This document shows positions 1 through 26,261 of a stretch of DNA of 27,314 nt, piece after piece. The stretch is taken from NCBI GenBank assembly GCA_051530055.1, contig JBMGUZ010000036.1:1-27314 (forward strand). The letters are read 5' to 3'. Within the stretch, counting starts at the first letter, position 1. Each line of letters starts with the position of its first letter. The notes under the pieces are model-generated. The model did no database searches, had not been told where the DNA came from, and saw nothing but the letters and a program-made list of their open reading frames with translations. This stretch comes from Neoechinorhynchus agilis. Its lineage: Eukaryota > Animalia > Acanthocephala. Position numbers and translations under genes: made by a program.

Positions 1-3000
1 TCAAATTGAAATTTCGGTGATTTAGGGAGTTAAAAAGTTCGTGGGAAATTCGATGTTGTGGATTGCTGCCTGTGAAGGAGATGAACAATTACAACCGAAA
101 ATTTTGTGCAAGAGAAAGGGAGCTTTTACCGTTTTAAGAAAAAAAAACCAACAAAAAATTTAAACATTCAAGCCGATTGATACCCAGTATAAACCTCAGA
201 ATGTTTTGAAGAGTTTCAAATTGAAATTTCGGTGATTTAGGGAGTTAAAAAGTTCGTGGGAAATTCGATGTTGTGGATTGCTGCCTGTGAAGGAGATGAA
301 CAATTACTACCGAAAATTTTGTGCAAGAGAAAGGGAACTTTTACCGTTTTAAGAAAAACAAACCAACAAAAAATTTAAACATTCAAGCCGATTGATACCG
401 AGTATAAACCTCAGAATGTTTTGAAGAGTTTCAAATTGAAATTTCGGTGATTTAAGGAGTTAAAAAGTTGGTGGGAAATTCGATGTTGTGGAATGCTGCC
501 TGTGAAGGAGATGAACAATTACTACCGAAAATTTTGTGCAAGAGAAAGGGAACTTTTACCGTTTTAAGAAAAACAAACCAACAAAAAATTTAAACATTCA
601 AGCAAATTAATACCGAGCATAGACTTCAGAATGTTTTGAAGAGTTTAAAATTGAAATTTCGGTGATTTAGGGAGTTAAAAAGTTCGTGGGAAATTCGATG
701 TTGTGGATTGCTGCCTGTGAAGGAGATGAACAATTACTACCGAAAATTTTGTGCAAGAGAAAGGGAACTTTTTCCGTTTTAAGAAAAACAAACCAACAAA
801 AAATTTAAACATTCAAGCTGATTGATACCGAGCATAAACCTCAGAATGTTTTGAAGAGTTTCAAATTGAAATTTCGGTGATTTATGGAGTTAAAAAAGTT
901 CGTGGGAAATTCGATGTTGTGGATTGCTGCCTGTGAAGGAGATGAACAGTTACTACCGAAAATTTTGTGCAAGAGAAAGGGAACTTTTACCGTTTTAAGA
1001 AAAACAAACCAACAAAAAATTTAAACATTCAAGCAAATTGATACCGAGCATAAACCTCAGAATGGTTTGAAGAGTTTCAAATTGAAATTTCGGTCATTTA
1101 GAGAGTTAAAAATTTCGCGGGAAATTCGATGTGGTGGATTGCTGCCTGTGAGGGAGATGAACAATTACTACCGAAAATTTTGTGCAAGAGAAAGGGAACT
1201 TTTACCGTTTTAAGAAAAACAAACCAACAAAAAATTTAAACATTCAAGCAAATTGATACCGAGCATCAACTTCAGAATGTTTTGAAAAGTTTCAAATTGA
1301 AATTTCGGTGATTTATGGAGTTAAAAAGTTGGTGGGAAATTCGATGTTGTGGATTGCGGCCTGTGAAGGAGATGAACAATTACTACCGAAAATTTTGTGC
1401 AAGAGAAAGGGAACTTTTACCGTTTTAAAAAAAACAAACCAACAAAAAATTTAAACATTCAAGAAAATTGATACCGAGCATAAACCTCAGAATGTTTTGA
1501 AGAGTTTCAAATTGAAATTTCGGTGATTTAGGGAGTTAAAAAGTTCGTGGGAAATTCGATGTTGTGGATTGCTGCCTGTGAAGGTGATGAACAATTAATA
1601 CCGAAAATTTTGTGCAAGAGAAAGGGAACTTTTACCGTTTTAAGAAAAACAAACAAACAAAAAATTGAAACATTCAAGCAAATTGATACTGAGCATAAAC
1701 CTCAGAATGTTTTGAAGAGTTTCAAATTGAAATTTCGGTGATTTAGGGAGTTAAAAAGTTCGTGGGAAATTCGATGTTGTGGATTGCTGCCTGTGAAGGA
1801 GATGAACAATTACTACCGAAAATTTTGTGCAAGAGAAAGGGAACTTTTACCGTTTTAAGAAAAACAAACCAACAAAAGATTTAAACATTCAAGCCGATTG
1901 ATACCGAGCACAAACCTCAAAATGTTTTGAAGAGTTTCAAATTGAAATTTCGGTGATTTATGGAGTTAAAAAGTTCGTGGGAAATTCGATGTTGTGGATT
2001 GCGGCCTGTGAAGGAGATGAACAATTACTACCGAAAATTTTGTGCAAGAGAAAGGGAACTTTTACCGTTTTAAGAAAAACAAACCAACAAAAGATTTAAA
2101 CATTCAAGCCGATTGATACCGAGCATAAACCTAAGAATGTTTTGAAGAGTTTCAAATTGAAATTTCGGTGATTTAGGGAGTTAAAAAGTTGGTAGGAAAC
2201 TCGATGTTGTGGATTTCTGCCTGTGAAGGAGATGAACAATTACTACCGAAAATTTTGTGCAAGAGAAAGGGAACTTTTACCGTTTTAAGAAAAAAAAACC
2301 AACAAAAAATTTAAACATTCAAGCCGATTGATACCCAGTATAAACCTCAGAATGTTTTGAAGAGTTTCAAATTGAAATTTCGGTGATTTAGGGAGTTAAA
2401 AAGTTCGAGGGAAATTCGATGTTGTGGATTGCTGCCTGTGAAGGAGATGAACAATTACTACCGAAAATTTTGTGCAAGAGAAAGGGAACTTTTACCGTTT
2501 TAAGAAAAAAAAACCAACAAAAAATTTAAACATTCAAGCCGATTGATACCGAGTATAAACCTCAGAATGTTTTGAAGAGTTCCAAATTGAAATTTCGGTG
2601 ATTTAGGAAGGTAAAAATTTCGTGGGAAATTCGATGTTGTGGATTGCGGCCTGTGAAGGAGATGAACAATTACTACCGAAAATTTTATGCAAGAGAAAGG
2701 GAGCTTTTACCGTTTTAAGAAAAACAAACAAACAAAAAATCTAAACATTCAAGCGAATTGATACCGAGCATAAGCCGAGTCATTTGAAGGTTCCAAATTG
2801 AAATTTCGGTGATTTATGGAGTTAAAAAGTTCGTGGGAAATTCGATGTTGTGGATTGCTGCCTGTGAATGAGATGAACAATTACTACCGAAAATTTTGTG
2901 CAAGAGAAAGGGAACTTTTACCGTTTTAAGAAAAACAAACCAACAAAAGATTTAAACATTCAAGCCGATTGATACCGAGCATAAACCTCAGAATGTTTTG

Positions 3001-6000
3001 AAGACTTTCAAATTGAAATTTCGATGATTTATTTAGTTAAAAAGTTGGTGGGAAATTCGATGTTGTGGATTTCTGCCTGTGAAGGAGATGAACAATTACT
3101 ACCGAAAATTTTGTGCAAGAGAAAGGGAACTTTTACCGTTTTAAGAAAACAAACCAACAAAAGATTTAAACATTCAAGCAAATTGATACCGAGCATAAAC
3201 CTCAGAATGTTTTGAAGAGTTTCAAATTGAAATTTCGGTGATTTATGGAGTTAAAAATTTCGTGGGAAATTCGATGTTGTGGATTGCGGCCTGTGAAGGA
3301 GATGAACAATTACTACCGAAAATTTTGTGCAAAGAGAAAGAGAACTTTTTAGTTTTAAGAAAAACAAACCAACAAAAGATTTAAACATTCAACAAATTGA
3401 TACCGAGCATAAACTTCAGAATGTTTTGAAGAGTTTCAAATTGAAATTTCGGTGATTTATGGAGTTAAAAAGTTCGTGGGAAATTCGATGTTGTGGATTG
3501 CTGCCTGTGAAGGAGATGAACAATTACTACCGAAAATTTTGTGCAAGAGAAAGGGAACTTTTACCGTTTTAAGAAAAACAAACCAACAAAAGATTTAAAC
3601 ATTCAAGCCGATTGATACCGAGCATAAACTTCAGAATGTTTTGAAGAGTTTCAAATTGAAATTTCGGTGATTTAGGGAGTTAAAAAGTTGTTGGGAAATT
3701 CGATGTTGTGGATTGCGGCCTGTGAAGGAGATGAACAATTACTACCGAAAATTTTGTGCAAGAGAAAGGGAACTTTTACCGTTTTAAGAAAAACAAACCA
3801 ACAAAAGATTTAAACATTCAAGCTGATTGATACCGAGCATAAACCTCAGAATGTTTTGAAGAGTTTCAAATTGAAATTTCGGTGATTTAGGGAGTTAAAA
3901 AGTTCGTGGGAAATTCGATGTTGTGAATTGCGGCCTGTGAAGGAGATGAACAATTACTACCGAAAATTTTGTGCAAGAGAAAGGGAACTTTTACCGTTTT
4001 AAGAAAAACAAACCAACAAAAGATTTAAACATTCAAGCAAATTGATACCGAGCATAAACTTCAGAATGTTTTGAAGAGTTTCAAATTGAAATTTCGGTGA
4101 TTTATGGAGTTAAAAAGTTCGTGGGAAATTCGATGTTGTGGATTGCTGCCTCTGAAGGAGATGAACAATTACTACCGAAAATTTTGTGCAAGAGAAAGGG
4201 AACTTTTACCGTTTTAAGAAAAACAAACCAACAAAAGATTTAAACATTCAAGCAAATTGATACCGAGCATAAACTTCAGAATGTTTTGAAGAGTTTCAAA
4301 TTGAAATTTCGGTGATTTATGGAGTTAAAAGTTCGTGGGAAATTCGATGTGGTGGATTGCGGCCTGTGAAGGAGATGAACAATTACTACCGAAAATTTTG
4401 TGCAAGAGAAAGGGAACTTTTACCGTTTTAAGAAAAACAAACCAACAAAAGATTTAAACATTCAAGCTGATTGATACCGAGCATAATCCTCAGAATGTTT
4501 TGAAGAGTTTCAAATTGAAATTTCGGTCATTTAGAGAGTTAAAAATTTCGCGGGAAATTCGATGTGGTGGATTGCTGCCTGTGAAGGAGATGAACAATTA
4601 CTACCGAAAATTTTGTGAAAAAGAAAGGGAACTTTTACCGTTTTAAGAAAAACAAACCAACAAAAAATTTAAACATTCAAGCAAATTAATACCGAGCATA
4701 AACTTCAGAATGTTTTGAAGAGTTTCAAATTGAAATTTCGGTGATTTAGGGAGTTAAAAATTTCGTGGGAAATTCGATGTTGTGGATTGCGGACTGTGAA
4801 GGAGATGAACAATTACTACCGAAAATTTTGTGCAAGAGAAAGGAAACTTTTACCGTTTTAAGAAAAACAAACCAACAAAAGATTTAAACATTCAAGCTGA
4901 TTGATACCGAGCATAAACCTCAGAATGTTTTGAAGAGTTTCAAATTGAAATTTCGGTGATTTATGGAGTTAAAAAAGTTCGTGGGAAATTCGATGTTGTG
5001 GATTGCTGCCTGTGAAGGAGATGAACAATTACTACCGAAAATTTTGTGCAAGAGAAAGGGAACTTTTACCGTTTTAAGAAAAACAAACCAACAAAAGATT
5101 TAAACATTCTAGCCGATTGATACCGGGCGCAAACCTCAGAATGTTTTGAAGAGTTTCAAATTGAAATTTCGGTGATTTATGGAGTTAAAAAGTTCGTGGG
5201 AAATTCGATGTTGTGGATTGCTGCCTGTGAAGGAGATGAACAATTACTACCGAAAATTTTGTGCAAGAGAAAGGGAACTTTTACCGTTTTAAGAAAAACA
5301 AACCAACAAAAAATTTAAACATTCAAGCAAATTGATACCGAGCATCAACTTCTGAATGTTTTGAAGAGTTTCAAATTGAAATTTCGGTGATTTAGGGAGT
5401 TAAAAAGTTCGTGGGAAATTCGATGTTGTGGATTGCGGCCTGTGAAGGAGATGAACAATTACTGCCGAAAATTTTGTGCAAGAGAAAGGGAACTTTTACC
5501 GTTTTAAGAAAAACAAACCAACAAAAAATTTAAACATTCAAGAAAATTGATACCGAGCATAAACCTCAGACTGTTTTGAAAGGGGTTTCAAAAGTTGAAA
5601 TTTCGGTGATTTATGGAGTTAAAGAAGTTCGTGGGAAATTCGATGTTGTGAGATTGCTGCCTGTGAAGGAGATGAACAATTACTACCGAAAATTTTTATT
5701 GCAAGAGAAGAGTTACCATTTTAAGAAAAACAAACCACAAAAAATTTAGACATTCAAGCCGATTGATACCGAGCATAAACCTCAGAATGTTTTGAAGAGT
5801 TTCAAATTGAAATTTCGGTGATTTATGGAGTTAAAAAAGTTCGTGGGAAATTCGATCTGTTGTGGATTGCTGCCTGTAGAGGAGATGAACAATTACTACC
5901 GAAAATTTTGTGCAAGAGAAAGGGAAGTTTTACCGTTTTAAGAAAAACAAACCATCAAAAAATTTAGACATTCAAGCCGATTGATACCGAGCATAAACCT

Positions 6001-7130
6001 CAGAATGTTTTGAAGAGTTTCAAATTGAAATTTCGGTGATTTATGGAGTTAAAAAGTTCGTGGGAAATTCGATGTTGTGGATTGCTACCTGTGAAGGAGA
6101 TGAACAATTACTACCGAAAATTTTGTGCAGAGAAAGGGAACTTTACGTTTAAGAAAAACAAACCAACAAAAAAAATTTTAAACATTAAAACAAATTGATA
6201 CCGAGCATAAACCTCAGAATGTTTTGAAGAGTTTCAAATTGAAATTTCGGTGATTTAGGGAGTTAAAAAGTTGGTGGGAAATTCGATGTTGTGGATTGCT
6301 GCCTGTGAAGGAGATGAACAATTATTACCAAAAATTTTGTGCAAGAGAAAGGGAACTTTTACCGTTTTAAGAAAAACAAACCAACAAAAAATTTAGACAT
6401 TGAAGCAAATTAATACCGAGCATAAACTTCAGAATGTTTTGAAGAGTTTCAAATTGAAATTTCGGTGATTTAGGGAGTTAAAAAGTTTGTGGGAAATTCG
6501 ATGTTGTGGATTGCTGCCTGCGAAGGAGATGAACAATTACTACCGAAAATTTTGTGCAAGAGAAAGGGAAGTTTTACCGTTTTAAGAAAAACAAACCATC
6601 AAAAAATTTAGACATTCAAGCAAATTAATACCGAGCATAAAACTTCAAGAAATGTTTTGAAGAGTTTAAAATTGAAATTTCGGTGATTTGGGAGTTAAAA
6701 AAGTTTACGAATGGGAAATTCGATATTTGTGTGTTGCTGCCTGCAGAAGAGTGAACAAATTGCGAAAATTTTGTGCAAGAGAAAGGGAAGTTTTACCGTT
6801 TTAAGAAAAACAAACCATCAAAAAATTTAGACATTCAAGCAAATTAATACCGAGCATAAACTTCAGAATGTTTTGAAGAGTTTCAAATTGAAATTTCGGT
6901 GATTTAGGGAGTTAAAAAGTTTGTGGGAAATTCGATGTTGTGGATTGCTGCCTGTGAAGGAGATGAACAATTACTACCGAAAATTTTGTGTAAGAGAAAG
7001 GGAACTTTTACCGTTTTAAGAAAAACAAACCAACAAAAGATTTAAACATTGAAGCAAATTGATACCGAGCATAAACCTCAGAATGTTTTGAAGAGTTTCA
7101 AATTGAAATTTCGGTGATTTAGGGAGTTAA
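1..7130 (+). repeat. Tandem satellite array, 215-bp monomer, about 33 copies (runs off the window start)
   Basis: TCAAATTGAAATTTCGG recurs at 1, 216 and 431 (single-base variant at 646), and so on to about 7100. Monomers are highly similar, A-tract rich, and contain the dyad TTTCAA-A-TTGAAA. Indel noise rises at about 5560-6800. Confidence 0.98.
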
Positions 7131-8888
7131 GTTGTACGGTAGGTCGCCTAGGACGGAGTGCACTGGAAGGTCAGGTGATGATCGCCCTCTTTGGGATTTC
7201 CTCTTGGGCGACTGGGATCTGGTGGTAGCCCTTGACCAGGTCGATCTTTGAAAACACCGGGCATCCGTGCAGGTTGGCGACAAAATCGTGGATGTGCGGC
7301 AGGGGGTACCTGTCTGGCTTCTTCGGCCTTGTCGACTTTGTGGAGAGGGCTCGATAACGGACTGCTCGACTTGCCGATGATCTCCATCTGTTCGAGTTTC
7401 CTGAACTCTTCTTTGACCATGTGGAGAATGGCTGGAGCAAGGTGCCTTGCGTGTCGAGGTGGGCTGCGTGTGACGATATGGAGCTGGACCTGATATCGAG
7501 CAGCCGAGTCGAACCTTGGTGTGAGGATGGCCGGGTACTTGGAGAGCAGGGTCTCGAAGTGTTTGCCGGACCTGGTCACGACGCTGTCAAGATTCGTTGA
7601 CCTCGGCGCCTCCAAGGAAATAAAGGTGGTTGGTGAAATGGCGACGAGTCTCTTGGACTGGAGGTCGAACATCAGCCCGACGTTTCGGAGGAACTCGGAA
7701 CTAAGGCTGGCGTGTCTGACGTTGGCAATTATGAAGTTCTACGGGTATCGAGCCCGGCCTGCGAGGTTAAGCGATAGTCTTTTGGTGCCGTAGGTCTGGA
7801 TGGTGCTGTGGTTGGCGGCGATAAGCCGCTTTTTGCTAAGATGGGCTCGATCGTCCCCTGACGGTGGGACGATGCTGATTTGCGCCCCTGTGTCGACGAG
7901 GAAACTTTGACGGGAATTCGCGTCGAAAACAAAAAAGAGGTGACAGCCGGCGAAGGTGTTTCCCGGCCCCATTGGGACCACATTGCTGTTGAAGACGCAG
8001 GGCAGGACGCAGTTCCTACCACGGTCGTTCCACTTGGCATGGAACCAATAGATGCCCGGTACTGTCCTCAGAGTTGGTTTGCCTTTGTGATGTTGTCGTT
8101 CCACGTCTACTTTCGGGCTTGCTTGATCGATCGCGCAGACGGTGGTCTCCGGTTATTGGAAAAAAGAATTTGTCTGCGATTTCGGCCAGGGCGATCAGAT
8201 CGAGAGTATCCAGAGTGGCGACCAGTTAACGGACCTTCATCGACAGCTGGTTGATGAAGTGGTATCGAAACAGGGGATCAGCGGCCGGGTACGAGTTCGA
8301 AGCGTACAGCGCCAGCATGCGCTCCAGGAGGCGCGAGGGGGTGTCGTCATTGATTGCCAGCTTTACGATCATCTGCATCCATTGGAATTCGGGATAACTG
8401 ACGATCTGTATTAGGCGATCTTCAGTGCGTTTTACCAATCGCCGTGCGGTGGTAGGTTTGCAACGAAACTTCATGGTCGACCCAGGATATCGGCGTTCAG
8501 AATTGTGTATGAATAGTCATATTTGTTTTGGTCCTGGGTGATCTCCCGGACCTATGAGAACCACATCGCGGCGTCCTTCGGTTTGAAAGCTGCTAGTTTC
8601 ACCGTAACAGTGCTGATCTGGGCAAGATTGGCCACCGCCTGGTTCATGGATGAAACCGAGGGTGTCGCTCCCGGGTTAGTTCGGGTCTGCCCTGATGTTG
8701 CCTTCGTTTGATGGTTGTTTGTCTTGCGATTTCATCTTTCATCTGAATCACCAATTTCGCGGCGACACGTAATCAAGACGAAGAATTTTATTATTGTCTC
8801 TACGATGGTCAAATATGTGTTGTTCTTCTGTTCGCCGACACAAACTTCCTACGGTTGCACATCGGACATCCGAAAGGAGTCTGCCACA
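7131..8888 (-). mobile_element. Degenerate, 3'-truncated Ty3/Gypsy LTR retrotransposon (gag-protease-partial RT)
   Basis: Gag: VKLAAFKPKDAAMWFS, DDTPSRLLERM...FRYHFINQLSMKVR, WFHAKW...NCVLPC. Protease: FLVDTGAQISIVPP, LIAANHSTIQTYG. RT: EEFRKLEQMEIIGKSSSPLSSPLHKV, DRYPLPHIHDF, VFSKIDLVKGYHQIPV. It has stops, frameshifts and deletions, and ends at the satellite before YxDD. No RNase H, integrase or second LTR. Confidence 0.93.
8743..8888 (-). repeat. Putative short 5' LTR (about 135 bp) with adjacent PBS-like motif
   Basis: The minus strand starts TGTGGCAG at 8888, contains AATAAA (8792-8787), and is followed by TGGTGATTCAG (8753-8743) upstream of gag. The canonical CA end is absent and there is no second LTR to confirm it. 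Confidence 0.45.
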
Positions 8889-10130: not shown

Positions 10131-10475
10131 ACCTCGCACCTCCCTGTACCTACGCTCCTTTTTCCATGCTACCCAATCTTCTCGGATATCAGAACTTGAA
10201 ATGAAGCCGAGGAAAGACCAACCTTACAAGTGCTCCTGCAAACAATAAACACCAATTCCCACCACAACGGGGACCTTCCAACCCGACAGGATATTCTCAA
10301 ACGAACGGACACATTCTCACCCGAACGAACCTCCCCACGACTGGATAGTTCCCATCCGAATAGGAATCCCTCTGACCAGATATTACCTCCAGAACGGGCA
10401 TCCCTCGATTGGATATTCCCATCCTAACGGATAAGGACCCAAAGGTTCATGGGTCCTCCTAAACCTTAAATCCAT
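10131..10475 (+). mobile_element. Probable solo 3' end of a non-LTR element (or SINE-like tail)
   Basis: 10131-10160 and 10347-10425 match 15824-15930 at the end of the LINE remnant. It contains degenerate GGATATT..C..GAACGG subrepeats and ends in a GGACCCA...TGGGTCC hairpin followed by TAAACCTTAAATCC. Confidence 0.5.
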
Positions 10476-10939
10476 TTATACGAGGGAACGTTCAACTGAA
10501 TCCATTTCGAAATTTTTTTATCCGAGATAATTATCAGTGTTCATTGCCGACGAATTCTGGAAGACACAAAATTCGTTGGGGAAACTTAAAATTTTAAGTG
10601 AAAAAGTATTCATGACTTACTTAATTTTTCAATTAATTTTTGAGTAGCAATGGTGCTCCAAAAATACTCGTTTAAGAATTGACTTGGAGACCAAATTCTC
10701 AAGAAATCATCGTTAAAGTTTTAGGGCCGTTTTACATTTTCAATTTTTTTGATTCGCTTCATGGAGTCATGAGATAGCGAAGTTGAAAAAATCGTTCAAC
10801 CTTTCAGGGTGCAAGGAAGTGAATGTGTTTCATCGTCGTTCTCCTTCCTTGACAAATTCGACGAGCTTCGAAGCACTTTTAAGCGAAAAAATTATTTACC
10901 GGATGTAGACCTTTCAAAAACATTTCCAATCACATATCC

Positions 10940-11069
10940 CCGGTACCTCCTCACATATCGACCTTGCTTAACATGCAAATAATCATTACATTTGCTTTTC
11001 GTTCACAAATTCCTCTTTTTCGTCCAATTCTGCAACTGTCGTCATGATTGTCGATATGTGAGGTACCGG
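10940..11069. repeat. Short inverted repeat (about 20-bp arms, 87-nt spacer)
   Basis: CCGGTACCTC(CTC)ACATATCGAC at 10940-10962 versus GTCGATATGTGAGGTACCGG at 11050-11069. Confidence 0.7.
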
Positions 11070-11618
11070 AGATCCAGGAAGCAGACGGATCGAAATGAGC
11101 TCTACTCTGGATACAACGGTTCATAAAGTGAATGATGCTTTTAGGCTAACCGCGATACCAAGTGACTGCCACTCAGCCAAAATCTTAACATTCGAAAATT
11201 ACATACAGGGAGCATAAAACGAGAATCGATTCCTTTTTCGCCCAAATCACAGTACCGTCTAATATTTTAGAGACAGAATGCATTCGTCGCCCACGCCGGT
11301 TGAAAACATATTCGCAGGCGTTCACTTCAAACTATGGGAAATATGACGAAATCAGCGACGATTCTTCCAGATTCGCGTAATATTTCGTGATTTGTACGTG
11401 GTGCCGCCTCGTGTAAATTAATTGTCAGTCAAGCTAAGAAAAATTCGTTCAAAGATGAGAGCAAATGCCAGGAACCGTTTATATTCTGATCAAATTTTAA
11501 AGAATCGGGACCTAATCTTAAGATTTCGTTGTGTTTAAAACGATCGTTTCAAAGTTAAATTTTAGAACACAAAATACCCGTTCCAAAATTTTTTTTACAA
11601 ATGAATGCCAAAAAACTA

Positions 11619-16030: not shown

Positions 16031-17402
16031 TTTTTATAGCGAATTATAATAATTGATTTATTTGATAATTTTCGGCCTTTGCGTAGGCCAACGCAAAGGA
16101 GATGTTCTGCAGTGTAGGAGCTACCGCGGCATGAAACTCATGTCTCACACAATGAAACTGTGGTAACGAATGATCGATTACAGGATTAGCGAGGAGATCC
16201 GAATCAGCGAGGACCAACGAGGATTCATGAGCGGCAGAAGCACAATCGACGCAATATTCGTGCTAAGGCAGCTGTATGAGAGGTAGTGTGTTTGTCGATT
16301 TGGATGGGGCGTGCGACACGGTCCCTCGGGATCTAGTGATCCAGTGTGGGCATGGCTCAGTAAAAGGAATTGTCCCGAACACTATGTCGCGGCGATCCAA
16401 GCGATGTATCGAGAGTACTACACCTGCGTGCGATGCCACAGCGGAACCACCGACTATTTCCGAGTCTCCGTGGTTCGGCAACAGGGTTCGGTCCTGAGCC
16501 CATTCTTGTTCACGATCGTGATGGACGTCCTAGGAAATGCGGAAAGAGAAATGAACCCGCCATGGACGACACTATTCGCGGACGATTTGGTGCTTACAGC
16601 TAGGGACGTGGACACGCTCAAGAATTTGCTGTAGAATTGGCGACAGCGATTAGGAAGCAACGGATTGAGAGTGAGCAGGCGCACAACGAAATAAATGGGG
16701 TCGTGTAACCTCGATATGCAAGGAACTTAGATCAAAAAGATCTTCAAATATTTGGGCAGCATGTTGAACATGCAATGTGAGCTCGAACCAGAGATCGGAC
16801 AAAGAGTTCACTGCAGGTGGAACAACTGGAGGAAGACAATAGGCATCCTTTGCGATAAGCTTCTCCCGAAATGGCGGGTGTACAAGGCAGTAGTGAGACC
16901 CGCAATGCTTTACGTAGCAGAGACGTGGGCTACGAAGAAGGAAAACGATCAACGATTAGCCGTCAACGAAATGCGGATGCTGAGATGGTCCGCAGGATTG
17001 ACACGCAAGCATCGAGTGCCCAATGAGGAGGTGCGAAAACTGTTTAATGCCGAGCCGATCGAGGAGGCAATCGCAAAGAGGCGGATGCGATGGTACCTGC
17101 AGGTGACACAAGCAAATGAAGACGCCTGGGTTAAGAGCGCATGGAGAATCGAACTCGAGGGGAAACGAAAAGAGGGAGGCCCAAGAAGAGGTGGGAGGAC
17201 AGTGTGAACGGAGATTTCAAGACGCTGGGAAAGGAGAACAAAGACGAAAGCTGACAATGCTGAAAAGAACGACCTCTCAAGTGAGAGAAAAGTTTAAAGA
17301 AATGTTGTTGCATAGGCCTTCTTCGTCAGTCTATTGTTTGTTAGTAATCGACGCTATGGGCCGAAAATTATCAAATCAATTATTATAATTCGCTTTAAAA
17401 AA
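16031..17402. repeat. About 45-bp inverted repeats (16031-16077 and 17359-17402) flanking the RTE fragment
   Basis: GCGAATTATAATAATTGATTT(ATTT)GATAATTTTCGGCC versus its reverse complement GGCCGAAAATTATCAAATCAATTATTATAATTCGC. Confidence 0.8.
16095..17305 (+). mobile_element. 5'-truncated, degenerate RTE-clade non-LTR retrotransposon (RT and C-terminus)
   Basis: GDVLQCRSYRGMKLMSHTMKLW*RMI, QRGFMSGRSTIDAIFVLRQL, QGSVLSPFLF, LFADDLVL, FKYLGS, YKAVVRPAMLYVAETW, EMRMLRWSAG. Several stops and frameshifts. Confidence 0.93.
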
Positions 17403-18206: not shown

Positions 18207-18836
18207 ATGTCGGTTGCGATGCAAGATCCTCCATTTGTGGTGTTCGTTCTCGGTCGTCCAGGTGCCGGAAAAGGGACTCAATGTGCTTTAATTTCTAAAC
18301 ATTTTAACTATATCCATCTATCGGCTGGAGACCTTCTTCGAAAGGAACGCGCCGAGCCCGGTTCGGAGCATGGAGAATTGATAGAATCGTACATTACGAA
18401 CGGACTTATAGTTCCAGTCGAAATAACGTGTTCATTGATTGAACGAGCGATGAGAGACAGCGGAAAAGATAGATTCGTGATTGATGGATTCCCTCGGAAT
18501 CAAGATAACTTCTGAATCGGGATCGTCGAAAGGGGCCTCGGCGATTCTGATCTTGTAGACGGTTGGCGAAAGCAATTAAGCAACAAAGCCAACGTTAAAT
18601 TCGTCTTGTTTTTTGATGTTTCCGAAGAAACAGGAGTTCAGAGGTGCATTGAACGGGGATGTTCTTCTAATAGAACGGACGACAACAAACAAAGTCTTCT
18701 AAAGCGACTGAGGACTTATAATGAGCAAACAATGCCTATTGTAAAGCATTACCAAGCTCAGAATCTTGTGCGTTTCGTAGACGCCAATAGATCTGTCGAA
18801 GAAATTTTCAACGACGTTAAAAAATTAAATTGGTAA
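18207..18836 (+). CDS. CMPK1: UMP-CMP kinase (adenylate kinase family); predicted exons 18207-18513 and 18559-18836, 194 aa
   Basis: [14 protein letters not shown]-loop, [51 protein letters not shown]. Both halves are in the same frame, separated by a 45-nt segment containing TGA. It could be a pseudogene if that segment is not spliced. Confidence 0.88.
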
Positions 18837-19052
18837 TGTGAAAGCAAGCGATATTATTTGCTAAGAGGGAAGAATCGGGAAATTCAAATTAACAGCCTTT
18901 CCTTTTGAACAATCCTGCCAGTCTGTTCGTTATCTCTTAGAACATTCTAATGGTCCTTCTGTAGCCAGAAAAACAAATCACGATTATTGCGTGTATTATT
19001 ACGTTTGGTTTTCGTACCGTGAGTTTTTCGTTTTCTGACACGTTTACGTTCG

Positions 19053-20147
19053 CCACCAACTTTTTAACTCCATAAATCACCGAAATTTCAATTTGAAACT
19101 CTTCAAAACATTCTGAAGTTTATGCTCGGTATCAATTTGCTTGAATGTTTAAATTTTTTGTTGGTTTGTTTTTCTTAAAACGGTAAAATTTCCCTTTCTC
19201 TTGCACAAAATTTTCGGTAGTAATTGTTCATCTCCTCCACAGGCAGCAATCCACAACATCGAATTTCCCACGAACTTTTTAACTCCATAAATCACCGAAA
19301 TTTCAATTTGAAACTCTTCAAAACATTCTGAGGTTTATGCTCGGTATCAATCGGCTTGAATGTTTAAATCATTTGTTGGTTTGTTTTTCTTAAAACGGTA
19401 AAAGTTCCCTTTCTCTTGCACAAAATTTTCGGTAGTAATTGTTTATCTCCTCCACAGGCAGCAATCCACAACATCGAATTTCCCACGAACTTTTTAACTC
19501 CATAAATCACCGAAATTTCAATTTGAAACTCTTCAAAACATTCTGAGGTTTATGCTCAGTATCAATTTGCTTGCATGTTTAAATTTTTTGTTGGTTTGTT
19601 TTTCTTAAAAACGGTAAAAAAAAGTTTCCCTTTCTCTTGCATAAAATTTTCGGTAGTAATTGTTCATCTCCTTCACAGGCATCAATCCACAACATCGAAT
19701 TTCCCACCAACTTTTTAACTCCCTAAATCACCGAAATTTCAATTTGAAACTCTTCAAAAACATTCTGAAGTTTATGCTCGGTATCAATTTGCTTGAATGT
19801 TTAAATTTTTTGTTGGTTTGTTTTTCTTAAAACGGTAAAAGTTCCCTTTCTCTTGCACAAAATTTTCGGTAGCAATTGTTCATCTCCTTCACAGGCCGCA
19901 ATCCACAACATCGAATTTCCCACGAACTTTTTAACTCCCTAAATCACCGAAATTTCAATTTGAAACTCTTCAAAACATTCTGAAGTTTATGTTCGGTATC
20001 AATTTTCTTGAATGTTTTGATTTTTGTTCCCAAAGTTTTGTTTGGCGATTCTTTATATCCTTCAAAGGCAACAATCAAGAGAATCGAATTCGCCACTAAC
20101 TGTTTAAATCACTGAAATTTCAATTTAAATCCTTCCAAACATTCTGA
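19053..20147 (-). repeat. Second array of the 215-bp satellite, inverted, about 5 monomers, last one degenerate
   Basis: Reverse complement of the 1-7130 monomer, with unit starts near 19053, 19268, 19483, 19703 and 19918. It diverges from about 20010 onward. Confidence 0.96.
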
Positions 20148-20171
20148 TCTTAGCTACCTTTTTTTGAAGAT

Positions 20172-23100
20172 ATGGATAATCGACGAGGTTATTCGTCCGG
20201 TCGACGAGGTGAAAGATATCAACGTCGAGGTGGAGGATATAGTAATCGTAGGCAGCAAAGCGGACGTTTCCAATCTGGACCTGACCGAGGGGGGCATCGT
20301 GGTAGAGGTGAAGACCAGGGATATCATCACCGTGGTGGTCCAGAAGGATTTAGAGGAAGAGGCGATAATCGTGGACGTTTTCATGGTGGTGTTGGTAGTG
20401 GACCAAGAAGACAACAATTCGGTAGTTCAATGGCATCGGGTAATGAGATTTTCAGGTTTACGGAAGGCATTGCAAAACAAGTAATTTTGAATCATACTTT
20501 TAAACAGCCAGATTTTGAGTCATTTGATATATGCCAACTTGGTACCGATAGACAATCGCCAGCATCGATTTCAACAGCCGTAAGAAAAATGGACATTAAA
20601 AAGCCAATAAAGGTGATGATAAATTACTATCCGTTCATTAAGCTTGGTGGTTTCTTCGTTTCTCAGTATGACGTGATTATCGAGGACGCATCTACAAGAA
20701 CAGTTGCTAACGATCCTAACAATTTCAACAAGCTTTCTCCGCTAAGGCAAAGAATGTTGGTTCAAAAAGCATTGCTCAAGATTTCCGAGCACCAGAATCC
20801 TGACTTCAGATACCGCGTTATTTATGATGGTGGCCGTATTGTGTACGCATTGAACGGTTGCCTTAATGGTGAAGACAAAAGGAGTGTATTTATGCAAAAT
20901 AGATATAGAGTGGTTTTTGAGAAAACTGCGGATATCGACATGAAAAGCGATACTCAAATGGTAAAGAATGCTGATCGGAAAATTGCTTTGTTACGGCCTC
21001 AATTGGCAGTTATCGACACGATCACAAAAACAGCACTTTCATGTCTTCTAGAAAGTTTTGGAAGATCGTTTTTTCCCATAAATGAACCACCCGTTCATCG
21101 ACTTGATCCATTGATGGGTCTTTTTAAAGGAATATTTGCCAGTGCTGTGGTCGCTTTCGATGCGTTGGCTTTAAATGTAGATGTTGCGAATGCTGTTCTT
21201 GCTCCGGAGATCTCGCTACTTGAGTATTTTAGGATTAAGGGATATTCGGACGCCGATGTTATGTGTGATAGTACGAATTCAAGAACTCTTGAACGTATGA
21301 GTGATTTAGTGTTTAAAGAAAGGAAAAAGGTTGTTATAAAATACAATGCAGAAGGAACGCACAAACGATTCGGTACATTTCATTCTCTTAATATAAAGTC
21401 GCCATATCAATACGAGTTTTCTTTGGACAAAGATGATAATGAGAGTAAAAAAGTCACCGTTGCACAATATTTCAAAAAGCAATACAATTACGATTGTTCG
21501 CGTCAATATGTGAGCGTGGCAACCGGGGGAGACGGACACGCAATCGTGCCGATTGAGCTTGTTTATTTGGCATCACGAAAAGTCCCAAACGAAGAATTAA
21601 GAAATTATATGGCTGATGTAATCAAGAAAACAGCGCTTCCTCCATGCCAAAGAATGAATGAAATTAATTCTAAAAATGAATATTTCCGATCAAAAATGAG
21701 CGAAAACAGTGATTGTGGCAAGTACCTACGGGCGTGGAATATTGAGGTATCCGATCGAATGGCTGTTGTAAAAGCTGGCATTCTGCCGATACCTCAGTTA
21801 TTCCACCAAAATGGTCAGATTTCTTACCCTCGAGCAACGGGATCCTGGTACGGTGGTCAAAACTTCTCCTATTTTCCGGGGACATTGACTACCAATGAAG
21901 TAACTTGGTCGTATTATATATTCCCAGGAGACAGATTTATAAATGATGACACCGTTCAAAGATTCCTATACTCGTTAACGGACATGGCTAGGAAATGTGG
22001 GATTCGTCTTGCCCAAAATGGACATTGCCATCAATGGCCGTTGGCTGAATTCAATGTCGAGTTCCCTCGGTACATTTTATCGGGACATGCAACGAAGTTA
22101 ACGTTTTTCTTCTCAAGACAAAACAGCATGCAATACCAAGGAGTGAAGGCTGCCGCGGAACTGGTCGGCGGTGTGGTCACTCAATTCATTACAGACAAAG
22201 CTTTAAACAAAAGAGATCGAAGTGGTGGACCTGATGGCCAGGTAATCGCAAATATATGCCACAAGTTATGTGCTAAGCTCGGCGGTATCAACTTGAGTCT
22301 TAATCGAGCCCCAGCGTCTACTACATTTTCTCCAAATACCGGGAATTACGGACGGACCATGTTTATCGGTCTCGATGTTACCCATCATGCTCTAAAAAGC
22401 AAAGGACTCACTAGTCGAGTATCAATCGCTGCTGTTGTAGCTTCAGTCGATTTCGTTCCTCATTCCTACATTACCGAGATTTCCCTTCAGAAAAATCCTC
22501 GGTATTCACGAGAAAGTGTTGAAATTGTTTATAACATGCAAACAATAATGCGACGGATATTGGTAAAGTATCGAGAGCGAAACAACTGTTTGCCAGATCG
22601 AATAATTGTGTACAGAGACGGTGTATCCGATGGTCAACTTGGCCTTGTCAATCGATTTGAAGTCAATGGCATAATAGAAGCCTGTCGAAAAGAAGGGATG
22701 CAGAATAATGTATTCCTTTCGGTTATTGTCGTCCAGAAACGGCATCATCTCCGAATGTTTCCAGTGGATCGAAACGATGCGGATCGCAATGGTAACCCGC
22801 TTCCGGGTACAGTTTACGCTCAAGAAATCTGCATGGATTCGAAAATAGACGCATTTCTGGTGAGCCACGCTGGAATCCAAGGAACATCGAGACCAACGCG
22901 GTACAGATTAATCTATGATTCCATTGGATTTAGTGAGAACGATCTTATGCAATTGACTTTTAATTTGTGCCATTTATACGCCAAATGCTTTCGCTCAGTC
23001 TCAATCCCGGCACCTTGCTATTATGCCCACCACGTCGCTTTCCGAGCGAGACACTATGTGGAATTTGCGCAAATTTGCGATCAGCGAATATGGGACTATC

Positions 23101-23231
23101 TTTACGAAGATGCTTTACAAACCAAACCCTGCGAAATGAAGAAAAAAGAAGGAAGTCCGGTCGATAGAAAATTGAAATTCTTGGTGTTGTCTCTCAATGA
23201 CCGTTTAAGTGGAAAACTGTACTTTTGCTAA
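20172..23231 (+). CDS. Argonaute protein (AGO-clade-like, divergent), 1019 aa, intronless, intact DEDH tetrad
   Basis: RG-rich N-terminus. PAZ: KKVTVAQYFKKQY, VPIELVYL. MID pocket: YQGVK, VTQF, CHKLCAKLGGIN. PIWI: FIGLDVTH, VEIV, YRDGVSDGQ, SHAGIQGTSRPTRY, SVSIPAPCYYAHHVAFRAR. C-terminus KLYFC. Confidence 0.98.
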   Translation: MDNRRGYSSGRRGERYQRRGGGYSNRRQQSGRFQSGPDRGGHRGRGEDQGYHHRGGPEGFRGRGDNRGRFHGGVGSGPRRQQFGSSMASGNEIFRFTEGIAKQVILNHTFKQPDFESFDICQLGTDRQSPASISTAVRKMDIKKPIKVMINYYPFIKLGGFFVSQYDVIIEDASTRTVANDPNNFNKLSPLRQRMLVQKALLKISEHQNPDFRYRVIYDGGRIVYALNGCLNGEDKRSVFMQNRYRVVFEKTADIDMKSDTQMVKNADRKIALLRPQLAVIDTITKTALSCLLESFGRSFFPINEPPVHRLDPLMGLFKGIFASAVVAFDALALNVDVANAVLAPEISLLEYFRIKGYSDADVMCDSTNSRTLERMSDLVFKERKKVVIKYNAEGTHKRFGTFHSLNIKSPYQYEFSLDKDDNESKKVTVAQYFKKQYNYDCSRQYVSVATGGDGHAIVPIELVYLASRKVPNEELRNYMADVIKKTALPPCQRMNEINSKNEYFRSKMSENSDCGKYLRAWNIEVSDRMAVVKAGILPIPQLFHQNGQISYPRATGSWYGGQNFSYFPGTLTTNEVTWSYYIFPGDRFINDDTVQRFLYSLTDMARKCGIRLAQNGHCHQWPLAEFNVEFPRYILSGHATKLTFFFSRQNSMQYQGVKAAAELVGGVVTQFITDKALNKRDRSGGPDGQVIANICHKLCAKLGGINLSLNRAPASTTFSPNTGNYGRTMFIGLDVTHHALKSKGLTSRVSIAAVVASVDFVPHSYITEISLQKNPRYSRESVEIVYNMQTIMRRILVKYRERNNCLPDRIIVYRDGVSDGQLGLVNRFEVNGIIEACRKEGMQNNVFLSVIVVQKRHHLRMFPVDRNDADRNGNPLPGTVYAQEICMDSKIDAFLVSHAGIQGTSRPTRYRLIYDSIGFSENDLMQLTFNLCHLYAKCFRSVSIPAPCYYAHHVAFRARHYVEFAQICDQRIWDYLYEDALQTKPCEMKKKEGSPVDRKLKFLVLSLNDRLSGKLYFC

Positions 23232-23555: not shown

Positions 23556-23871
23556 ATAGTATAGAGAAAGTAAAGCAGACATTTTGTGCATAGATACTTT
23601 AGTTGTGTAGATATTCATTTAGGAATTAATTATGATGGTGAACTGAAGGAAAAAAAATTATATATTAATCAGAATTTTCGACCAATGCGTTGGTCTTCTT
23701 CAGTGATTGTAAAATAGTATAGAGAAAGTAAAGCAGACATTTTGTGCATAGATACTTTAGTTGTGTAGATATTCATTTAGGAATTAATTATGATGGTGAA
23801 CTGAAGGAAAAAAAATTATATATTAGTCAGAATTTTCGACCAATGCGTTGGTCTTCTTCAGTGATTGTAAA
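23556..23871 (+). repeat. Direct tandem duplication of 158 bp
   Basis: ATAGTATAGAGAAAGTAAAGCAGAC...CAGTGATTGTAAA starts at 23556 and at 23714. The copies are near-identical. Confidence 0.95.
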
Positions 23872-24618
23872 TTAATCGCCTAGTTGTGAACCTGAGTGTG
23901 TCTCGCGATCTCGACCGCGTTTTGATTTCGAAAGGAATGCATTCGCAGTACCGAGAGCTGATGATCACACAGAGAGAAAATTGTTGATGTTGCGATAGGG
24001 CATAGAAAACTTGACGGATCGTTATATGGATTACCGCTCGAAACCGAATCTTCCGTTGAGTGAACGACGAGCACTGAGGTCTCTGAAAGAGAAAGTGCAA
24101 AAGAAGGAGATGAGGATAACAGTGAGCGATAATGCAGGTGATCTCGTGGCGATGGAAAGCAGCGTGGAAAGTGCGATGATGGGGACGTTATTGGGTCACA
24201 CTGATACATATACAATGGCGACAAAAGACGAATGTGAGCAACAGCGCAAGGAGTTGAATGCTGCTCTTCGAAAAGTGATATCGGCTCGAGAGTTGAAAGG
24301 GATGAGCAGTTTCACACACGGTCCATTACGTACGCCGGTGATGTACGGATTGGTCAAGACACACAAGATGCCTATTGGTCCGATTACACCGCAAGCAGCC
24401 TCATTGCTGAAATGCAGACCAATCATATCTGCGGTTAATGGACCAGCGTACCGTGTTTCTCGTTTCCTGGCTTCGGCTATCGGTCCATTGCTACGGAGGA
24501 CACGGGCATGTGATTGTAAATTAATCTAATCGAACAATCACTGAAGAAGACCAACGCATTGGTCGAAAATTCTGATTAATATATAATTTTTTTTCCTTCG
24601 GTTCACCATCATAATTAA
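23784..24618. repeat. 85-bp inverted repeat (23784-23868 and 24534-24618), fold-back or MITE-like
   Basis: TTAATTATGATGGTGAA...CTTCAGTGATTGT versus ACAATCACTGAAG...TTCACCATCATAATTAA, with 1-2 mismatches. Confidence 0.92.
23878..24509 (+). mobile_element. Internal fragment of a Penelope-like element (N-terminal part of RT), flanked by a 17-bp direct repeat
   Basis: VVNLS...LISKG, PNLPLSERRALRSL, ITVSDNAG, PVMYGLVKTHK, CRPIISAVNGPAYRVSRFLA. GTGATTGTAAATTAATC occurs at 23861-23877 and 24510-24526. Confidence 0.88.
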
Positions 24619-25568: not shown

Positions 25569-26261
25569 ATGGAGGCGATAAAGATGTTTCTTTATAAAAA
25601 TTACACAGGTGAATACTGGTGATATAATTCGGGATTTGAACAAATAAAATGTAAAATATGTTTTCTATTTGTTGGGATTTTATGATTTCTGGTCATGAAT
25701 AAAGTGAAACCTGATCCGCGTTTTTGAACACTTAATTTCAGACACACAAACATTGCGGCAAAAAATTAAAATGTTCGATAAAATAGTAGCAGTAATGAGT
25801 GGCAAAGGTGGAGTCGGTAAATCTACAATATCTGTTGGATTATCTCTAGCCTTATCGCACTCAGGATATCGTATTGGTCTTCTAGACGCTGATGTATATG
25901 GATGTTCAATTCCTCGGCTCCTTTCAGTGTCTCAAAAGGACTTAATCGAAACAATTCAAGTTAACTCTCTCCCCGTAGCACTAGTTAAGAACACAAACAT
26001 TCAATGTGCATCCTTAAGGCTTTTATCGTCAAAAGACAGCCCTTTGGCATGGCGTGGTTTGATAAATAAACGACTTGAATTTAACACTTGTTCTTGTGCG
26101 GCTGCATATGGAGTTGCAACCAACAAGAGATCGGTAATTGAAAGACGTTCTTTAAGTGTTAAAATCACATCACCTGTTCCTGGGGGACAGTCCACCACCA
26201 AGTAGTCCAGTGGTCGTTGCCATTCAGATTGAAATATCAATTGATTCAGTGCTTTTGTTGC
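25569..26261 (+). pseudogene. NUBPL: Rearranged and truncated NUBPL/Ind1 (Mrp/NBP35-family Fe-S scaffold ATPase)
   Basis: Probable exon 1 at 25569-25608 and a GT-AG intron at 25609-25741 (CAG|GTGAAT...TTTCAG). Then VAVMSGKGGVGKST, GLLDADVYGCSIP, AWRGLI to 26064. The continuation (ATKALNQL...LDYLVVDCPPGTGD...VATP) is on the minus strand at 26261-26065. The C-terminal part is absent. Confidence 0.88.

Follow-up and report, generated by a model that had tools for sequence, protein, structure and literature searches.

The DNA analysed here, called the window over its full length, is a 27,314-bp contig of the acanthocephalan Neoechinorhynchus agilis in which a gene for an Argonaute protein stands just downstream of an inverted block of a 215-bp satellite. 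The 1019-amino acid (aa) open reading frame (ORF) of the Argonaute matched exactly one public record, contig JBMGUZ010000036.1 of assembly GCA_051530055.1, and the window is this entire contig. No further copy of the protein was found in a collection of 5.8 billion clusters. The assembly was produced by hybrid MaSuRCA/Flye assembly with Hi-C scaffolding and comprises 46.2 Mb. Of its 102 contigs, three account for 94% of the sequence; the genome is compact and has 13,655 genes, called with BRAKER from RNA sequencing (RNA-seq) data (PMC12690905). The window thus belongs to the roughly 99 small contigs of this very compact genome that are unplaced. It is a mosaic of genes and decayed repeats (Table 1), with a nucleotide kinase gene upstream of the satellite block, on the same strand as the Argonaute, and a NUBP/ParA-type gene as another neighbour of the Argonaute. 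In all, about 100 kb of N. agilis DNA were examined.

The Argonaute gene is intronless and its ORF is uninterrupted. The predicted protein has an RGG-rich N-terminus and matches the Pfam family Piwi (E = 7.6e-80) and, more weakly, ArgoN, ArgoL1, PAZ and ArgoL2. In an alignment with human AGO3 that spans residues 280-963, the catalytic DEDH tetrad is intact (D735 in GLDVTH, E784 in VEIVYN, D816 in YRDGVS and H953 in YYAHHV), as is the Y-K-Q-K-K pocket of the MID domain that binds the 5'-phosphate (...smqYqgvKaaaelvggvvtQ... and ...ichKlcaKlggin...). A first-pass annotation of the window had called the protein slicer-competent. The intact tetrad makes this plausible rather than proven, since slicing requires the tetrad but is not guaranteed by it; human AGO3 carries DEDH and is nevertheless a poor slicer for most guides. 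In a search of PDB the best matches were human AGO1-4 (E about 1e-67, 231-234 bits), with Arabidopsis AGO10 also among the best, whereas the best chain of the PIWI clade reached 3.5e-35 (125 bits), so that the protein is nearer to AGO than to PIWI. It shares with AGO-clade Argonautes of the small interfering RNA (siRNA) type, such as Ago2, the full set of ArgoN, L1, PAZ, L2 and Piwi domains, the tetrad and the MID pocket. It differs from them in being RGG-rich, intronless and only about 30% identical to canonical Argonautes, and in having its nearest relatives only among acanthocephalans: two N. agilis paralogues (61% and 55% identity) and a protein of Pomphorhynchus laevis (36%). A UniParc entry is also close to it (41%). 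Against the 61%-identical paralogue, dN/dS (the ratio of nonsynonymous to synonymous substitution rates) is about 0.17, a value computed from the proportions pN/pS because dS is saturated, and both genes have been retained by purifying selection. These features are best explained by a functional, divergent AGO-clade Argonaute from a lineage of acanthocephalan proteins whose N-termini are RGG-rich.

The satellite consists of head-to-tail tandem monomers of fixed length, with 33.2 copies in the main array at the start of the contig and 4.5 plus about 0.8 degenerate copies in the small block. The first-pass annotation had placed the satellite directly before the Argonaute start and had noted its inversion, and both observations were confirmed: the block extends from 19049 to 20149 and ends 22 nt before the ATG at 20172, and BLAST, register-aware alignment and an nhmmer monomer profile all put it on the strand opposite to the big array. 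To describe the entire upstream region as satellite was an overstatement, as the block measures 1.1 kb and is preceded by 212 nt of unique DNA (18837-19048) and then by the kinase stop codon. The four complete monomers of the block are 96.7-98.6% identical to the big-array consensus. Mean pairwise identity is 94.5% within the block, 93.0% within the big array and 93.7% between the two, and the inner monomers of the block, which are ordinary members of the family, showed no private variants, no subfamily structure and no signs of selection. Monomer 5 turns degenerate abruptly at about 20026, with a 42-nt deletion and about 75% identity to the consensus, and the final partial copy (20098-20149) retains about 78% (nhmmer E = 1e-6). 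From 20149 up to or including the ATG, satellite homology is not significant, as 87% of shuffled sequences score equally well. The degenerate relic contains two TTTAAAT motifs, at 20103 and 20124, 48-69 nt 5' of the ATG.

Searches of Rfam at gathering thresholds over the whole window, and at E<=10 over 18800-20200, gave nothing meaningful and no spliced leader (SL) RNA family, and no tRNAs were found; by these tests the satellite is not an array of SL-RNA, small nuclear RNA or 5S genes. The predicted RNA fold of 19925-20200 is not unusual (z = -0.72). The 215-bp satellite is absent from both other N. agilis contig segments examined, which carry the paralogues (L001 of contig 13 and L003 of contig 28).

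The edges of the block bear on whether its position next to the gene is genuine. Both block edges (19049 and 20089) carry TTCGCCAC, an octamer that no monomer of the big array has; all 33 have TTTCCCAC in its place. The edge on the Argonaute side is graded, as natural array edges are, and decays to about 75-78% identity. Compared with the big array, the block reaches 95.6% identity at best, and no pair of monomers exceeds 97.7%. On this internal evidence, to which the near-equal identities within the big array and between array and block also belong, the block looks like an independent genomic copy in situ, neither a fold-back nor a chimeric join, and the picture is that of an old, short satellite relic beside the gene, the middle of which would later have been expanded or homogenised with the general pool. 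The first-pass annotation had raised a misassembly as grounds for rejecting the adjacency, and all three of these features oppose it. That the hybrid assembly of a repeat-rich unplaced contig produced the junction or the copy number of the block is accordingly very improbable in our judgement, even though the contig is small, unplaced and begins inside satellite, and the inner edge of the big array (7130/7131) is abrupt and adjoins a truncated retrotransposon. The copy number of the homogeneous monomers could have been collapsed in the assembly. A simple inversion that split one array in two was considered and rejected, as the monomer phases do not fit (phase 7 at 7130, phase 208 at 19049 and phase 59 at 20147). 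A search for inverted repeats at the two inner array edges detected nothing besides the satellite itself.

Closer inspection of the sequence on either side of the block showed motifs that resemble splice sites. The ATG is preceded by TCTTAGCTACC-TTTTTTT-GAAG-AT, with an in-frame TAG at 20151-53. The resemblance of the T7 tract and AG to a splice acceptor, pointed out in the first-pass annotation, was borne out: the AG (20168-69) ends 2 nt from the ATG, and sites of the form T5+...AG occur at 0.6-0.8 per kb per strand, which gives a chance of about 1% that one ends within 10 nt of a given ATG. A branch-like CTGAT (20144-20148) lies 22 nt upstream of this AG, and AAG acceptors are present in other annotated N. 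agilis introns. At the other end, 25 nt before the block, the donor-like GTGAGT at 19019 is the sole GTRAGT of the 212 unique nucleotides (such sites have a background of 0.38 per kb per strand; P(>=1) = 0.077). At the level of motifs, donor, branch, pyrimidine tract and AG thus stand in the correct order and spacing. When the block (19049-20149) is subtracted from the segment that they delimit (19019-20169), 30 + 20 = 50 nt remain; the annotated intron of the NUBP gene (25817-25864) has 48 nt. The earlier statement that there is no room for a promoter holds for the 22-nt gap and fails further upstream, where 182 nt of unique DNA end in the GTGAGT donor. Since 22 nt are too short for a core promoter and a leader, either the promoter is now within the relic, or it is situated 5' of the block, and the block's sequence is excised from the RNA.

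Table 1. Features of the window (contig JBMGUZ010000036.1), in order of position
Feature	Position	Strand	Remarks
Main 215-bp array	1-7130	-	Tandem Repeats Finder (TRF): 33.2 copies; runs off the contig start
Truncated Ty3/gypsy-like pol, GC-rich	7131-8104	-	Aspartyl protease, then start of reverse transcriptase (RT) with DLVKGYHQIPV
RRM-domain ORF, 243 aa	9179-9910	-	E = 3e-14; GC-rich region beside retrotransposon fragment
Second RT fragment	16311-16634	+	Flanking 47-nt inverted repeats at 16031-16077 and 17359-17401
ADK/CMPK-type nucleotide kinase gene	18207-18836	+	Pfam ADK, E = 6e-27; stop codon 18834-36
Unique spacer, candidate promoter and putative non-coding exon 1	18837-19018	+	182 nt without satellite homology
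GTGAGT, consensus 5' donor-like hexamer	19019-19024	+	25 nt before the block
Homogeneous monomers of the inverted block	19049-20025	+	TRF: 19053-20025, 4.5 copies, 93% matches
Degenerate relic	20026-20149	+	Rest of monomer 5 and partial monomer 6; about 75-78% identity to consensus
3' splice-site-like segment	20144-20169	+	CTGAT (branch-like, A at 20147), CTACC-T7 (T7 20159-20165), GAAG (20166-20169)
Argonaute coding sequence (CDS)	20172-23231	+	1019 aa, intronless, uninterrupted ORF

The reading that we prefer, with a probability of roughly 0.4, is that the satellite expanded inside a mini-intron of formerly about 50 nt in the 5' untranslated region (UTR) of the Argonaute gene. To the anatomy described above it adds a transcription start, the use of two splice sites and a history. 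A short block of the locally abundant satellite would have been seeded, and later expanded, in the 5' leader of the gene. Transcription would start in the 182 nt of unique DNA right after the kinase stop codon, and a short non-coding exon would end at the GTGAGT donor (19019). The intron (19019-20169, 1151 nt, about 95% satellite) would be excised at the T7-GAAG acceptor, so that exon 2 of the mature mRNA would begin 2 nt 5' of the ATG. The satellite would then be a tolerated intronic passenger, present in the pre-mRNA and absent from the mRNA, for which a regulatory role is not needed. The suggestion of the first-pass annotation that the primary transcript carries satellite sequence is made plausible by the acceptor-like site, but an arrangement of promoter, exon 1 and intron would need no special mechanism.

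Several points weigh against a satellite-filled intron. The arguments from donor and acceptor were drawn post hoc and each is weak by itself, the AT-rich flank next to the paralogue has many GTRAGT sites, and the acceptor is AAG, not YAG. An intron of 1.15 kb would be long for this genome, and the CDS itself is intronless, as are 6 of the 13 neighbouring gene models. No transcript-derived copy of the protein was found in the sequence collection, the supplements of the transcriptome paper contain nothing on the Argonaute, and in the small-RNA paper the sheet on PIWI has only BLAST matches to Drosophila Piwi (PMC12256650). The TTTAAAT motifs at 20103 and 20124 could equally serve as a TATA-like element with a start at about 20155, which would leave the satellite outside the RNA. 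This leads to a possible, though less probable, alternative, in which the relic and spacer (20026-20171) hold the core promoter together with a very short 5' UTR. Transcripts would start at about 20150-20165 and carry little or no satellite, either as pre-mRNA or as mRNA, and the homogeneous monomers would be mere neighbouring DNA. Other annotated N. agilis genes have TATA-like A/T motifs 20-45 nt before the ATG, suggesting very short leaders, and this would suit a compact genome; the relic is moreover older and more diverged than the rest of the block, which would have given time for co-option. Yet TTTAAAT occurs once in every ordinary monomer and is common in DNA of 66% A+T, the former promoter would have had to give way to the satellite while the gene survived, and the donor and acceptor that bracket the block would be left unexplained.

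The same acceptor-like site could instead receive a trans-spliced leader, which we regard as rather unlikely. Transcription would read through from the kinase gene or start in the satellite, and a leader would be joined to the outron at T7-GAAG, 2 nt before the ATG. In trans-spliced nematode genes the acceptor lies right beside the ATG, as the acceptor-like site does here. No AATAAA or ATTAAA occurs on the plus strand in the 1335 nt from the kinase stop codon to the ATG, and an acceptor-like site lies within 15 nt of 4 of 14 annotated N. agilis starts, compared with 8.4% of all ATGs (p = 0.025), although this sample of 14 is small and some of the starts are possibly internal exons. Among relatives of the acanthocephalans, bdelloid rotifers are known to use SL trans-splicing, but the monogonont Brachionus yielded no SL (PMC1925144), operons have not been reported in rotifers (PMC7986045), and the literature searched holds no report of trans-splicing for Acanthocephala. 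The kinase gene from which transcription would read through has an in-frame stop and is maybe a pseudogene. This TGA (18513-15) lies within a 48-nt in-frame segment (18510-18557) that has no counterpart in other CMP kinases and that ends in TTGTAG at its 3' end but starts with TT rather than GT; it may represent a mini-intron with non-canonical ends, a pseudogene or an erroneous base. In BRAKER the kinase model ends at this TGA (102 aa).

We also observed that the 11-mer ATTCTGATCTT has only two copies in about 68 kb of N. agilis DNA (18544-18554 and 20141-20151, both on the plus strand). Each copy lies just 5' of an AG that precedes coding sequence, one where the kinase segment ends and the other where the relic of the satellite stops short of the Argonaute ATG. 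The pair may reflect a common branch and acceptor context, or chance.

The paralogues provide a comparison for the 5' flank. The copy on contig 13 is one uninterrupted 980-aa ORF (L001 10001-12943). In the annotated paralogue ACOME3_010471 (940 aa) a 120-nt intron is spurious, and the skipped 40 codons hold the catalytic histidine motif YYAHHVAFRAR. The copy on contig 28 (L003) belongs to a truncated, rearranged duplicate of the L001 cassette that is 97-98% identical to it. The arrangement with the 215-bp satellite is not kept at either locus: the 5' flanks of the paralogues contain no 215-bp satellite and have no similarity to the flank in the window (blastn and tblastx, L001 and L003), from which it follows that the satellite arrived after the duplication, beside an already working gene. 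A GTGAGT about 1.2 kb before the ATG of the paralogue was considered as a parallel to the donor in the window and given no weight, as several other donor-like GTAAGT/GTAAA sites occur there. A TUDOR-domain gene lies upstream of the Argonaute in both L001 (2699-3871) and L003 (3843-5252); together with the RGG tails, this neighbour is suggestive of a partnership between methylated arginines and Tudor domains in this AGO-clade lineage.

All three Argonaute copies are on unplaced contigs (contigs 36, 13 and 28, of 27, 59 and 34 kb), although unplaced sequence makes up less than 6% of the assembly. The family seems to be confined to a repeat-rich compartment, be it pericentromeric, sex-linked or other, and in such a compartment a satellite neighbour is unremarkable. 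The contigs of the paralogues have satellites of their own, with 14.8 copies of a 214-bp unit (L003 11292-14468) and 2.5 copies of a 452-bp unit (L003 9417-10552), and L001 has further repeats with 2.4 copies of a 205-bp unit (5238-5737) and 18 copies of a 28-bp unit (1-510). None of these repeats is related to the 215-bp satellite. Counting the latter, three different satellites have a unit length of about 205-215 bp.

The homologue in P. laevis (L004; WNNJ02000350.1, 999-30352; 36% identity) has at least seven exons over 16 kb, and its N-terminus carries RGG repeats and an RSGGGYQD repeat. In the first 11 kb or so of this locus TRF detected no comparable satellite. In the annotation the protein is fused to a DHX37_C domain, probably through the merging of gene models. 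One intron (10149-11415) contains a 12-bp microsatellite of about 105 copies.

The first-pass annotation had proposed that satellite-derived small RNAs or heterochromatin could regulate the Argonaute and so form a satellite-sensing feedback loop. This proposal would fit any model in which the block is transcribed, but the sequence offers no evidence for it: neither of the two paralogous loci has the satellite, which is therefore not a trait of the family, and the monomers show no private variants, signs of selection, unusual structure or match to a known RNA family. Adjacency to a satellite is also to be expected from location alone, as the Argonaute copies are all in repeat-rich unplaced contigs. 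N. agilis has piRNAs with a ping-pong signature and PIWI genes, which would suit such a loop, but no RNA-dependent RNA polymerase (RdRP); the absence of Dnmt1/3 speaks against the loop (PMC12256650). Analogous circuits are known (the ROS1 rheostat, PMC4380477, and TCAST1, PMC4537270). Altogether, a satellite in the promoter or pre-mRNA that ties Argonaute expression to satellite small RNAs or heterochromatin seems to us most unlikely. Because block and 7-kb array have opposite orientations, transcripts of the two in the same direction would be complementary and would open a route to double-stranded RNA (dsRNA) without RdRP. In the corresponding scenario, which we consider highly improbable, the block is transcribed as an intron or outron of the Argonaute pre-mRNA and pairs with array RNA into about 1 kb of dsRNA, and the resulting siRNAs load into the RGG-tailed, slicer-type Argonaute and act on its own nascent transcript or locus.

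Three known systems resemble parts of this arrangement. In Tribolium castaneum the satellite TCAST1 also forms short arrays near or inside genes, and modulation of the neighbouring genes through siRNAs and histone H3 trimethylated at lysine 9 (H3K9me3) after heat stress was shown experimentally (PMC4537270; PMC11610590). As in the window, a major satellite occurs there also as blocks of a few monomers, and these are as similar to the main array as main-array monomers are to one another; regulation was demonstrated in Tribolium, whereas here it would be hypothetical and the neighbouring gene is itself an Argonaute. The "methylation rheostat" of ROS1 in Arabidopsis is a silencing-pathway gene with a 5' repeat targeted by the pathway, the expression of which reports pathway activity (PMC4380477), and it embodies the same concept as the feedback proposed for the window Argonaute. 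It differs in relying on RNA-directed DNA methylation (RdDM) as well as on DNA methylation of transposon-derived sequence, while N. agilis lacks Dnmt1/3 and RdRP (PMC12256650). With respect to the preferred reading, a satellite-filled 5'-UTR intron, the closest parallel is a functional gene in satellite- and transposon-rich DNA that tolerates repeats in the non-coding parts of its transcription unit. Heterochromatic genes of Drosophila, including AGO3, and Y-linked genes have introns filled with repeats or satellites. Their repeats extend over tens of kb to Mb, compared with 1.1 kb here, and the intron in the window is a predicted one.

The remainder of the window contains further genes and repeats. 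The big satellite array meets the Ty3/gypsy-like pol in an abrupt junction at 7130/7131. The RRM-domain ORF is missing from the gene list for the annotated portion of the contig that was examined. Downstream of the Argonaute, a 158-bp unit is repeated twice with 99% identity (23556-23871), and a 90-nt element (23952-24041) that may be a small mobile element has 91% identity to a segment 3' of the paralogue (L001 14723-14809).

Of the first-pass annotation, the observation was confirmed and the interpretation gained partial support. In its class the arrangement is an ordinary one: a gene in repeat-rich DNA has a satellite block in its non-coding 5' part, although the gene itself is an interesting one. 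If this ordinary reading holds, the locus would be one more case of a satellite spreading into a non-coding part of a gene; if the dsRNA scenario were true, the amount of Argonaute would be coupled to satellite transcription by a loop of dsRNA and siRNAs. Poly-A RNA-seq from 74 libraries (PMC12690905) and small-RNA data (PMC12256650) are publicly available for N. agilis and bear on the presence of the satellite in the pre-mRNA, on trans-splicing and on satellite small RNAs. For annotation, a 5' exon of the Argonaute is probably missing from the gene model, and the annotated intron of the paralogue is spurious. The interest of the locus lies in its putative slicer-type Argonaute, a member of a poorly known, acanthocephalan-specific lineage with copies in repeat-rich unplaced contigs.

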